From Blastocystis sp. Blastoise (Eukaryota > Protista > Bigyra: Opalinata), in assembly GCA_039096225.1 (NCBI GenBank), contig JBBPEB010000025.1, positions 310,001 to 374,000 of the forward strand: a stretch of 64,000 bases of DNA. Reading direction: 5' to 3'. The notes below the pieces were generated by a model. That model saw only the letters and a program-made list of their open reading frames with translations, made no database searches and was not told where the DNA came from. Positions 4,642 to 20,785 of this stretch are shown in pieces (position 1 is the stretch's first letter; every line of letters starts with the position of its first letter). A program made the translations under genes and the position numbers.

Positions 4642-4696
4642 GAGATAATTCATACTCAGCATAGTATTATATAAAAACTTGAGAGTCAGCATAGTG
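4642..4696 (+). repeat. MULE-A left TIR
   Basis: GAGATAATTCATACTCAGCATAGTATT...GTCAGCATAGTG is the near-perfect reverse complement of 20732-20785; contains TCAGCATAGT twice. Confidence 0.95.
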
Positions 4697-4852
4697 AAAT
4701 ACATAGACGACTGTCCCACGGGGTTAATAACAATTCGGCAATGTTTTTATAATACAAAAATCAAATAAAATAATCATTGTTCTTTTTCAACAATTAAAGA
4801 GGCAAAATTGAATTCTTAATTATTTTGCTTGTATTATTAAATATATACAAAA

Positions 4853-7800
4853 ATGTCAGACTTTGACCTAGACAAGATCATAGATGACATAAAAACAGAA
4901 GATTTAGAGCAGTACAAGGCTCACATCCCGGAAATGCTGACAGTATGTTTTAAAAATGGTTTTATCGATTCTTTAGAGACATAAACAAAGCAACATAACA
5001 ATAAATCAATTAACAAAAGCAACAGCTAATAGATTTTCGAAAAAGCAAGCAATGAATGTCGAGTCACTTATAAAAGAAAATGATTTTAATGGTTTCTTTA
5101 CAAAAAGCATGGCATATCCATTTATAATTGGAAGAAACATCGGTCTTTATAAGAGGTTCAACATTTGTCAGACATTCAATTCAAGACCAGAAGTGGAATC
5201 ATTCATTAGACTCTGGTCCCATGTAAACGGTTACTCATTACTTATAGAAAGAAGTAACAAAACAACGATACGTTTTATTTGTCCGATCATGGAATGTAAT
5301 TTCGTTGTCCAGTACACTTATCATGATGGTTCTTTCAACATTACCCATTTTCACAATCACGATACAGATGTATATATATATATTTAAACATTTTTTTTTA
5401 TTTAATACTTAATCATTTACTTGTCATTTACTTTTTATTCTTTTATTAAAGTTATAATACATTATATTTTATCATTACGAATGTATTCTGATATAGAAGT
5501 GCTCAAAAATTATAACAAATTATATTGAAATTTTGAATGGAAATAGAATTAGAAAATCCGTGTATAATTATTTTTGGAAATTGCTCCAGTCAGAAAATAC
5601 AAACATTATAGTATCTAATGATAGTCCAAAAGATACTATGAATTTTAATGATACTAGAGAGATTACTTCATCTTCTGATTATAAAGGTATAATTTCAAAT
5701 TTAAATAAAAATATTAATTCCTCTAATATATTACTCATGAATAGCGAACAAAATATTTATGAAGAAGATATTTTAGAAGAAAAATTTACTCCAGAAGAAG
5801 AAAGAATAATTAATTCTTTGAATGATAATGAAGCAAACAAAGTATTCATATCTTCATTTATTGATGATACTATGGAACGAATGAGAAAACAATACGAACC
5901 TTCAGTGAAGAATAATGAAATATATAATTTATATATGGATTATGATAATAGTGATAATGAAGATACTATGAATGATAATACTTACATGAATATGAGTACT
6001 AATGATTATATTCCTGCTAATAATGATTATACTAATAATAATAATGATACTAACAATAATTATACTAATAATGATTATACTAATAATAATGATTATACTA
6101 ATAATAATAATGATACTTCTAATACTAATAATTGTTATAATTCTATTACTAATAACGACGATACTAATAATAATACTTTGAATACTACTAATAGTAATAA
6201 TGGTTATAATTCTATTACTAATAATAATACTTTGAATACTACTAATAATGATACTTCTAATACTAATAATGATACTTCTAATACTAATAATGGTTATAAT
6301 TCTATTACTAATAATTCTGTTACTAATAATAATACTTTGAATACTACTAATAATAATAATGGTTATAATTCTATTACTAATAATAATACTTTGAATACTA
6401 CTAATAATGATACTTCTAATACTAATAATGATACTTCTAATACTAATAATGGTTATAATTCTATTACTAATAATTCTGTTACTAATAATAATACTTTGAA
6501 TACTACTAATACTAATAATGGTTATAATTCTATTACTAATAATAATACTTTGAATACTACTAATAATGATACTTCTAATACTAATAATGATACTTCTAAT
6601 ACTAATAATGGTTATAATTCTATTACTAATAATTCTGTTACTAATAATAATACTTTGAATACTACTAATAATAATAATGGTTATAATTCTATTACTAATA
6701 ATAATACTTTGAATACTACTAATAATGATACTTCTAATACTAATAATGATACTTCTAATACTAATAATGGTTATAATTCTATTACTAATAATTCTGTTAC
6801 TAATAATAATACTTTGAATACTACTAATACTAATAATGGTTATAATTCTATTACTAATAATAATACTTTGAATACTACTAATAATGATACTTCTAATACT
6901 AATAATGATACTTCTAATACTAATAATGGTTATAATTCCATTACTACTAATAATAATGATACTTCTAACACTAATACTAATAATAATCTTGTGAATACAA
7001 TTTCCAACGATGATATTATGAATAATGATACTATAGGTACACTAAATAATATAAAAGGTATATTAATACTATTACTAGTAATATAATTATATATATATAC
7101 ATATATAGGTTTTAATGATGATGAAAATCAATTATTAGCTAACGCATTAAATAAACGATCTTTAAATGATGTAGATAATTCAATTAGAACGGTTTCATTT
7201 GAAGATTTTCAGAAGTTAATTAATAATCTAAAAGATAGTGTAAACATTGCATATGTTGATAAAAGTACCAAGAACATCTTTAAGGATCCTCTTAATTCTA
7301 CTTTTGTATCTTGCTATCTTGAATGTCACAAAAAATACAGATCTATGACTATAAAAGATACGATAAATGATATTAAGCTTCTATTTCCTAATCTAAACTA
7401 TAATCAAATATATTACTCTGTCACTTCCTTCTTTACTGCAAATGATAATTCTTATAGTTTTATCCCTCAAATAATTGAGGGTATTAACAATATAAATACT
7501 TATAATCAAGCATTTTATCAATTATATGATGGAAAGAAAGTAGATAATAAGAAAGCATTTCAAACTATCCAATTTGTTAATACTGAAATCGAAGATGATT
7601 CTATTAATAACAAACTTCTGTGCTGCGCCACTATGTTAGCTGAAAATATAAAGCTATTAAAGTATTCTCCACCAGTGATTTTCCTCGACGGCACTTTTAT
7701 GGGATTGGGTTCAACTGTAACACTAGTTATTACTGGTATATATATATCATCTTATCAATTCTATTATTTTTTATAATATATTTTTTATGTAATATATATA

Positions 7801-18951: not shown

Positions 18952-19353
18952 TTATTATTATTATTATTATTATTATTATTATTATTATTATTATTATTAT
19001 TATTATTATTATTATTATTATTATTATTATTATTATTATTATTATTATTATTATTATTATTATTATTATACTTATTATTATTATTATTATTATTATTATT
19101 ATTATTATTATTATACTTATTATTATTATTATTATTATACTTATTATTATTATTATTATTATTATTATTATTATTATTATTATTATTATTATTATTATTA
19201 TTATTATTATTATTATTATTATTATTATTATTATTATTATTATTATTATTATTATTATTATTATTATTATTATTATTATTATTATTATTATTATTATTAT
19301 TATTATTATTATTATTATTATTATTATTATTATTATTATTATTATTATTATTA
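18952..19353. repeat. (TTA)n microsatellite, ~400 bp
   Basis: Direct reading. Confidence 0.9.
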
Positions 19354-20731
19354 TCATATATAAAGAGCTCTACGTCTATTACCAAAACTCTTTCAAATTT
19401 TTATTTCTTTGTAGCCTATGTCTCTATAAAGATAATTAATGATATATTTGGTATTATATTTATATTTATATCCCTGAATATTGATGAATACTAACAGTTC
19501 TTCTTTCACTATTTCATTATCTAATGTACTTTCTCTAAAGTTTTATATACTTTCTTTTTTCTTTTTTCAATAACATTCTATCTTATAATATATATATGTA
19601 TTGATTTCAACAAATTATGTTATTTGACTTCTTGGAAATTTATTATATAATTGTTTTTAATATATATAAACAAAAATATTTTAAGAACTATACTATTTTA
19701 TTATAGGAATATTCTTTATATTTCTATAGGTGTTATAATACTATATTTACCATAATTATTATAATAATTTGTTTTTTTATCTTTTAATTACAGCACATCA
19801 TTGTTTTACTGCACTAAGATGCGTGAATACTACACAACTAATAAAATTCTGAATAAAGTTCAAAGTTCTTTTTTATTGTATATCACATATTACACTAACA
19901 TTTAAGTGTATATAAAAGAGTTTTGTTAAATATATCCGTTAATTAGATTTCATATAAATTACTCAATACATATAAAATGTGGTTTATATGATCAAAATGT
20001 ATTTTTATAATCAATAAATAATTGATAACACATAGCTATTAACGTTTCTAAGCTCATAATGCATTCCATTATGTGGTTCTCTTTGTAGTAACATTATTTA
20101 TTATTGATAGGTTAATGAAAACTTTTTATAATAAGATATATAAATACAAACATGCTATTAAAAATTCTAACTGCCACAAAGGACAATTACATTAATGTGG
20201 CTTAAAATGAATCAAAGATGCTAAGTCAACATATATTATATATATATAAGTTATGTAAAAAATAATTACATAATAATATCAACTCTATTCAAATATCTAA
20301 AGAAATCAGCCATTCTTATCATACTCATACTGATATTTTATTATATATATCATTTTATAGAAATCAATTGCAATTAGACTAAGACAAGAACGTTCTCTAG
20401 AGAATTCTTGATTTTAGTAAATGAATCCATTTTATAAAATGCTTACTAGTCCATTTTGAAATTACCCTTTGTTGGATATTAGTCTCATCTTCATTTATAT
20501 GCTGAATATATACCTTTTATCCAGAATTAGCATCAATTGATAATCTTGTTAAACGTTAATTGAGAAAATATTCATCAATATGAGGTATATGTGAATATAT
20601 TATATATTATATACATATAGATATACTATATGTGCATATATATTAGAGTCACATATTTCTATTTATTAATTTTTCCCCCGTAATTATTTACAGTAGTCAG
20701 ATACTATCGGTATGAAAAATATTCCCCACAC

Positions 20732-20785
20732 CACTATGCTGACTATCAAGTTTTCAACAATACTATGCTGAGTATGAATTATCTC
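20732..20785 (-). repeat. MULE-A right TIR
   Basis: CACTATGCTGACTATCAAG...CTGAGTATGAATTATCTC followed by TSD AGGGTCTAAA. Confidence 0.95.

Follow-up and report, generated by a model that had tools for sequence, protein, structure and literature searches.

We analysed a 64,000-nt window of contig JBBPEB010000025.1 (assembly GCA_039096225.1, positions 310,001 to 374,000 of the forward strand) from the gut protist Blastocystis sp. Blastoise, and found at positions 4642-20785 a DNA transposon of the Mutator superfamily. We read it as a very young, structurally intact and probably autonomous copy of a Mutator-like element (MULE), with a probability of roughly 85%. The element carries an intact six-exon transposase gene at its left, followed by a long AT-rich tail that includes a degenerate fragment of a host gene, and all of this moves between the same pair of ends.

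The edges of the element are perfect inverted repeats of 27 bp, exact reverse complements of each other at 4642-4668 and 20759-20785. This terminus has just these two matches in the window when up to three mismatches are allowed, and none appeared in 100 shuffles. Likeness between the terminal inverted repeats (TIRs) reaches about 54 bp per end, taking in a second copy of a 10-nt box, TCAGCATAGT, which lies at positions 15 and 45 from each terminus and occurs nowhere else in the 64 kb. These paired boxes are presumed transposase-binding sites. Directly outside both ends stands a perfect 10-bp target-site duplication, AGGGTCTAAA, of the kind that movement by DDE (Asp-Asp-Glu) cut-and-paste would leave behind. 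Scanning the window for the terminus, again with up to three mismatches, and for the box revealed no internal TIR ends inside the element.

A pattern search of the 33.3-Mb genome recovered the perfect terminal sequence six times, as three inward-facing pairs on three contigs, spanning 15.3, 15.4 and 16.1 kb. The genome therefore holds exactly three full elements of this family (family 1), one on each contig, and each has its own perfect 10-bp duplication, those of the other two copies being GTTTTTTAAA and GAAGAAACCC. The three are colinear over their full length. The window copy differs from the other two by 0.65-0.68% in aligned substitutions, and these differ from each other by 0.06%; length differences fall almost entirely in simple repeats, and the 1-kb flanks are unrelated among the copies. 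Three colinear copies, each with its own duplication, indicate that the full 15-16 kb transposes as a single unit, and the shared order, distinct duplications and unrelated flanks together rule out a mis-join, a segmental duplication or a patchwork of shorter elements. At least two very recent transpositions have moved the whole 15-16 kb.

The transposase gene occupies the left 5.7 kb. Our six-exon model was built by translated comparison with a second MULE in the window (family 2, described below) and by direct reading of the junctions. It gives a coding sequence of 3735 nt with no in-frame stop, interrupted by introns of 34, 127, 51, 754 and 1016 nt that have 11-24% GC; all five run from GT to AG, and their phases are consistent. 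Junction positions are shared with the NCBI model of the family-2 paralogue (WA158_004538, hereafter P0001), to which exons 4 and 5 are 51% and 56% identical, ungapped at the junction. The end of the gene, at 10569, lies beyond what simple reading of open reading frames (ORFs) suggests.

The catalytic core is divided between exons 4 and 5. The codons of the catalytic triad lie at 7687, 8633 and 8921 (the latter two at 8633-8635 and 8921-8923), spaced by 64 and 96 residues as D-64-D-96-E, and a CxxH motif (8696-8707) was read from the translation 21 residues past the second Asp. A SWIM finger follows at 9179-9223. In Pfam, exon 5 matches MULE (PF10551, E=1e-12 to 1.5e-13), Transposase_mut (PF00872) and SWIM (PF04434, E=5e-5). 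The MULE domain of P0001 covers profile positions 1-98 and begins at residue 523, which corresponds to residues at the end of exon 4, so that exon 4, by alignment to P0001, contributes the first ~20 profile positions. Further upstream, exon 2 encodes a Cx4C...HxH motif (5280-5360), probably a DNA-binding zinc finger. A tandem repeat in exon 3 (6077-6951; 159-bp unit, 5.5 copies, 97% matches) stays in frame and yields a stretch rich in Asn and Thr; in the two copies outside the window it is 525 nt shorter, with the frame kept.

In all three copies, the exons are open throughout and the splice signals are all intact. The amino acids of exon 5 are 100% identical among them, and the transposase copies differ in the 525-nt in-frame change of exon 3 and in three C-terminal residues. 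The element combines a MULE/DDE domain, TIRs, a SWIM finger, a CxxH motif and a duplication that, at 10 bp, falls in the 8-11-bp class, all of which place it in the Mutator superfamily, and it holds a complete open transposase gene between its ends, as an autonomous element should. Word-based protein searches for the transposase returned just three paralogues from the same genome, which says nothing firm about relatives elsewhere; the first such search was probably swamped by low-complexity words.

A search of sequencing runs with sampled words of the interval 7100-14600 gave two. A polyA metatranscriptome run labelled as gut metagenome contains 16% of the sampled words, where the exon share of the interval is 22%, and one run of unclear type contains a fraction of 0.33. 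The former is at most a hint of transposase expression in an animal gut sample, and neither run is counted as evidence here.

Host DNA can be recognised at one place in the right part of the element. A 1.7-kb fragment (14825-16491) aligns in order with 1.5 kb of contig 2, where the single full-length DNA_pol_phi gene of the genome is located. This parent is a multi-exon gene whose ORFs match positions 1-765 of the Pfam DNA_pol_phi profile, and the fragment matches positions 633-765 only, in the 3′ part of the gene. The captured stretch comprises a 3′ exon, the downstream non-coding DNA and the next ORF of the parent, and since all of these were copied, it originated in genomic DNA and not in mRNA. 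The fragment is about 12% diverged from its parent and is the same in all three copies, indicating one old capture and not variable cargo or ongoing gene shuffling; set against the <0.7% divergence among copies, it also places the capture long before the recent transpositions. With a ratio of replacement to silent changes of 4:3 over 61 codons and an exon broken by TA repeats, the fragment looks like a decaying, neutral pseudogene piece. It may have been copied in once, well before the recent burst that yielded the three copies, via template switching in gap repair as in the transduplication of Pack-MULEs, and the TAT microsatellites on both of its edges hint that the switching could have taken place there.

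The other ~8.5 kb of the tail consists of simple repeats and AT-rich non-coding sequence. None of ten candidate ORFs in the tail had a Pfam match, no Rfam families or tRNAs were found, and no ORF is conserved between copies: the two longest non-repeat ORFs, which are the most protein-like, carry frameshifts or stops in the sister copies, and the genome shows no further match to them. The tail shows no internal non-simple repeats, inverted or direct, and the intervals 11500-14650 and 16880-18900, searched alone against the genome DNA, returned just the three copies, simple repeats aside. Its tandem-repeat share of ~27% is the sum of Tandem Repeats Finder (TRF) intervals, and GC-richer islands lie at 11542-12141, 13267-13491 and 18517-18666. 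A Fanzor/TnpB-like passenger, a lead taken from PMC3627910, is unsupported because the tail has no long ORF. We suggest that the element carries its right 10.2 kb along as passenger DNA, which encodes nothing recognisable.

Much of the architecture had been anticipated by a first-pass annotation of this stretch, which described matching TIRs 16.1 kb apart, a perfect 10-bp duplication, an in-frame spliced transposase with DDE motifs and ~10 kb of extra DNA behind it. The TIRs proved exact over 27 bp, with no chance matches expected, and the duplication reads identically at both edges; the transposase resolves into six exons with GT..AG introns and a located D/D/E triad, and the extra DNA measures ~10.2 kb (10570-20731). 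The idea that one element both codes for a transposase and carries non-transposase DNA is thereby borne out. The genome-wide search that it proposed, with ends paired by duplication and cargo catalogued per copy, yielded three pairs, three distinct duplications and the same cargo each time. Neither a mis-join nor smaller nested elements, the two outcomes that it had named as fatal to its reading, came to light, there being no internal ends and one order in all three copies.

Table 1 Coordinates of the family-1 element, its parts and related elements. Positions are those of the window unless another contig is given; cells are empty where nothing applies.
Feature	Position	Strand	Remarks
Left target-site duplication AGGGTCTAAA	4632-4641	.	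Read directly; identical to 20786-20795
Left TIR	4642-4696	+	27 bp perfect; second TCAGCATAGT box 30 bp past first; terminal sequence same in all 3 genomic copies
Transposase exon 1	4853-4942	+	ATG, 30 codons, then 34-nt intron; peptide conserved with family 2; junction agrees with P0001
Transposase exon 2	4977-5369	+	Peptide 46% identical to family 2
Transposase exon 3	5497-7057	+	Holds in-frame Asn/Thr-rich tandem repeat
Transposase exon 4	7109-7735	+	First catalytic Asp at end (7687-7689), start of MULE domain; 51% identical to P0001 residues 337-542
Intron 4	7736-8489	+	754 nt, 11% GC, minisatellites
Transposase exon 5	8490-9345	+	Remaining MULE domain, second Asp, CxxH, Glu, SWIM finger
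Intron 5	9346-10361	+	1016 nt, 12% GC; equivalent intron spliced out in annotated P0001
Transposase exon 6	10362-10569	+	Basic C-terminal tail and stop codon; 51.5% identical to last family-2 exon
Non-transposase tail	10570-20731	.	~10.2 kb, 18% GC, ~27% tandem repeat, colinear in 3 copies
Minisatellite block	10669-11413	.	19-26-bp units; similar repeat in last intron of family-2 transposase gene
(TAT)n array, left edge of fragment	14625-14863	.	
Transduplicated, degenerate host DNA polymerase phi fragment	14825-16491	+	Broken by TA repeats; 78-94% identity to G000:C2:214030-215550
(TAT)n-type array, right edge of fragment	16422-16871	.	
Right TIR	20732-20785	-	Two boxes, 29 bp apart; reverse-complement match to left end
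Right target-site duplication AGGGTCTAAA	20786-20795	.	Matches left 10 bp
Family-2 MULE	44205-55689	-	11.5 kb, 52-bp perfect TIR; 9-bp duplication AAAATAAAT at 44196-44204 / 55690-55698
MITE loci (elsewhere in genome)	G000 L020-L031 (e.g. C18:626690-627040), C4:1122416-1122527, C5:307545-307686		

A second MULE begins 23.4 kb downstream of the first. Its transposase gene runs along the minus strand from 55485 to 51136, and behind it lies a 6.9-kb tail, AT-rich and non-coding, that is common to all copies of this family, of which the genome holds five in full (11.5-12.3 kb). A further pair of family-2 ends on contig 14 (124437-155243) stands 30.8 kb apart and probably holds nested insertions. 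The two families have the same exon-intron plan, 51-56% amino-acid identity in the transposase core, nearly the same first 11 nt of their ends (10 of 11 positions) and a long AT-rich tail after the gene. They differ in their TIRs past those 11 nt, in duplication length (9 bp in family 2), in element size and in the tails themselves, which are unrelated; comparison at the protein and DNA levels found no accessory gene common to both. As far as the family-2 tail was examined, it showed no recognisable gene fragment. Candidate fragments there, with 68-70% matches to contigs 2 and 22, turned out to be shifted minisatellite alignments that vanish with low-complexity filtering.

Gene capture is thus documented once in these two families, and long non-coding tails are common to both. 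This tempers the first-pass annotation, which had spoken of a family of gene-capture vehicles with a second member 23 kb away. There is a MULE at that place, yet it belongs to a different family, with 51-56% identity and other TIRs, and the term vehicle overstates a single host-derived, degenerate piece of 1.7 kb that is invariant among three copies. What stands of that overall reading is a transposase that moves with extra DNA as one unit.

Traces of related activity are found elsewhere in the genome. A relaxed search for the terminal motif gave about 20 further sites, and all 12 that were fetched are miniature inverted-repeat transposable elements (MITEs) of equal length, 142 bp, with clear 9-10-bp duplications in 11 cases. 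Their ends agree with the element terminus at ~22 of 25 positions, one MITE end even having the box twice, and the search showed no deletion derivatives of intermediate size. This MITE family fits past activity of a transposase of this type. Queried with exon 5, the genome yields 31 matches to the transposase core in several identity classes. These include at least four other MULE transposase classes, at 55% (the class of the family-2 element in the window), 41% and 28-32% identity to exon 5; several of these matches are open without a stop over 635-763 aa.

All three family-1 insertions are intergenic and lie 110-180 bp upstream of the start codon of a neighbouring gene. For the window copy, this neighbour encodes a PACS-1-like sorting protein (20899-23715, plus strand, with C2_PACS_N and Pacs-1 domains) and starts 114 bp past the right end of the element. 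MULEs favour the 5′ regions of genes, and the three insertions fit this preference (n=3). The window contains another DNA transposon at 26877-28730 (minus strand), where an open frame of 617 aa matches the hAT C-terminal dimerisation domain (E=4.7e-7); the poly-Leu run that breaks it, without loss of frame, probably represents an intron filled with repeats. Introns of this repeat-filled kind, seen throughout the window, also occur in a multi-exon gene at 56416-60030 (plus strand), which has a cyclic-nucleotide-binding domain, a protein-kinase-like C-terminus and a very long poly-Asn tract.

The protein matches bear the NCBI name Blastocystis sp. Blastoise, which appears to correspond to isolate Rus-B, from a Russian tortoise; this name overrides the dictyostelid origin that base composition had suggested. 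The Rus-B genome comprises 33 contigs and 33.3 Mb at 23.1% GC, and its introns exceed the 30-nt introns of human subtypes in both length and variability (PMC10690189). The same study puts transposable elements at 5.6-7.5% and low-complexity DNA at 11.8-12.7%; it gives bulk transposon percentages only and does not mention Mutator elements. MULEs are on record in stramenopiles generally, and we found no description of one in Blastocystis in the literature.

Several observations weigh against a young, intact and probably autonomous MULE. The exons were checked singly, unjoined, and such exon-wise evidence shows just that the pieces fit; the N-terminal exons, exon 2 included, have no Pfam match. 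The family is small, with three copies, and their divergence of 0.06-0.68% is too low for conservation to tell constrained from unconstrained sequence. The MITEs could be moved by another, related transposase, and calling the other ~8.5 kb of the tail a non-functional passenger is an argument from absent signal. One rival explanation is an element that is no longer autonomous: its gene would be silent or inactive, and a different MULE family would have mobilised both the three copies and the MITEs in trans. The genome does offer at least four other MULE transposase groups among its 31 matches, and the ends of the two families agree at 10 of their first 11 positions. Past those 11 nt, however, the family-2 ends are wholly different, and three copies with all exons open, splice sites intact and an identical exon 5 protein make loss of autonomy unlikely in our view; the polyA-run word share of 16%, near the exon share of 22%, is a further counterpoint, as a hint only. 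Ends wrongly joined in the assembly, or duplication of a chromosome segment in place of transposition, are scarcely credible. The many simple repeats of the region can mislead assemblers, but an identical 15-16-kb order is seen three times on three contigs, the likeness ends exactly at the termini with unrelated flanks beyond them, and each copy has its perfect 10-bp duplication.

Two further explanations concern the tail. It might hide a needed accessory module, in the manner of mudrB in MuDR or VANB/VANC in VANDAL21, whether as a gene heavily split by introns or as a non-coding RNA. All three family-1 copies retain the tail over its full length, family 2 likewise keeps its 6.9-kb tail in all five copies, and the GC-richer islands would suit such a module; moreover, ORF scans are weak here because the genes of this genome are split by repeat-filled introns. 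We nevertheless judge a hidden module quite improbable, as neither the ten ORFs in Pfam nor the searches of Rfam and for tRNAs gave a match, frameshifts or stops interrupt the two longest non-repeat ORFs in the sister copies, family 1 and family 2 have unlike tails at both protein and DNA level, and copies this young need no selection to have kept the tail. We see similarly little likelihood in a tail assembled from nested mobile-element insertions and microsatellite growth, with the polymerase phi piece as the sole and incidental host DNA. About 27% of the tail is tandem repeat, in a genome with a low-complexity share of 11.8-12.7% (PMC10690189), and the family-2 copy with ends 30.8 kb apart suggests that nesting does occur. 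Against this, the tail has no internal inverted or direct non-simple repeats, the intervals 11500-14650 and 16880-18900 do not recur elsewhere in the genome, and the polymerase phi piece is plainly host genomic DNA. We therefore retain the reading of an intact MULE that carries a largely non-coding passenger.

With three near-identical full copies whose transposase genes are intact, and with some 20 MITEs to match, this element is a good candidate for a still-active transposon. Mutator elements have apparently not yet been described in Blastocystis, as far as the literature searched goes, and a candidate active transposon in a common gut protist lineage is the usual raw material for mutagenesis tools. 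The element also provides a clean case of Pack-MULE-style capture outside plants, by an element that keeps its transposase, and its kilobase introns, together with the 7-10-kb non-coding tails of both families, show that the AT-rich, repeat-driven bloat of tortoise Blastocystis genomes reaches their transposons. A bolder proposal, to which we attach a rather low likelihood, is that large MULEs are active now in tortoise Blastocystis and still acquire host DNA, with the long conserved tails possibly a functional part; a conserved tail could, for example, be a transcribed non-coding module or a spacer that aids escape from silencing or target finding. If active, capturing MULEs were confirmed, Blastocystis would have its first natural DNA-capture vector able to mobilise itself, a means of insertional mutagenesis or delivery in a protist with few genetic tools.

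Compared with known systems, the element resembles MuDR, Jittery and Fusarium Hop in its DDE transposase with MULE domain, CxxH motif and SWIM-type finger, in having TIRs, in a target-site duplication within the 9-11-bp range and in insertion near the 5′ ends of genes. It is three times as long as MuDR, no second gene like mudrB was found in it, and its TIRs extend over ~54 bp with two boxes and not over ~200 bp. The six exons, the minisatellite-filled introns of 0.75-1.0 kb, the in-frame Asn/Thr repeat and the gut stramenopile host further distinguish it from elements of the MuDR type. Among plant elements, KI-MULEs that carry ULP1 are large members of the Mutator superfamily, 8-20 kb long, with a transposase and further sequence. 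VANDAL21/Hiun (VANA-VANC) is alike in superfamily, in its 8-20-kb size class and in combining a transposase with further sequence. The extra sequence of VANDAL21 and the KI-MULEs consists of intact functional ORFs, whereas no second intact ORF was found here, and VANDALs lack TIRs, which are perfect in the Blastocystis element.

With Pack-MULEs (Jiang et al. 2004, as cited in PMC6446971), the element shares a genomic fragment of a host gene, exon and adjoining non-coding DNA, that is enclosed by MULE ends and copied as part of the element. Pack-MULEs have no transposase and carry variable cargo, whereas the transposase here is intact and the cargo invariant, with one fragment found. Retention of the transposase gene keeps the element out of the Pack-MULEs as strictly defined, although the capture itself is Pack-MULE-like. 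The closest counterpart by lineage is a MULE of the diatom Phaeodactylum tricornutum (3.7 kb, TIRs of ~200 bp, a 9-bp duplication and a MULE+SWIM transposase), which carries a whole expressed E3-ligase ORF as passenger and whose movement was observed in real time (bioRxiv 10.1101/2023.01.02.522487). Both are stramenopile elements with a MULE+SWIM transposase, extra host-family sequence beside it and near-identical copies; the Blastocystis element differs in its 15-16 kb, in a passenger made up of a broken fragment and non-coding DNA, and in that its movement is deduced from sequence comparison. Autonomous MULEs with extra host-derived sequence are already known in plants and in a diatom, and the novelty that the first-pass annotation implied for an element both autonomous and cargo-bearing gives way to precedent, including one within the stramenopiles (bioRxiv 10.1101/2023.01.02.522487). 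Nothing here points to a new mechanism of transposition, which appears conventional; what sets this element apart is its host, youth, intactness and size, together with a clean capture event.

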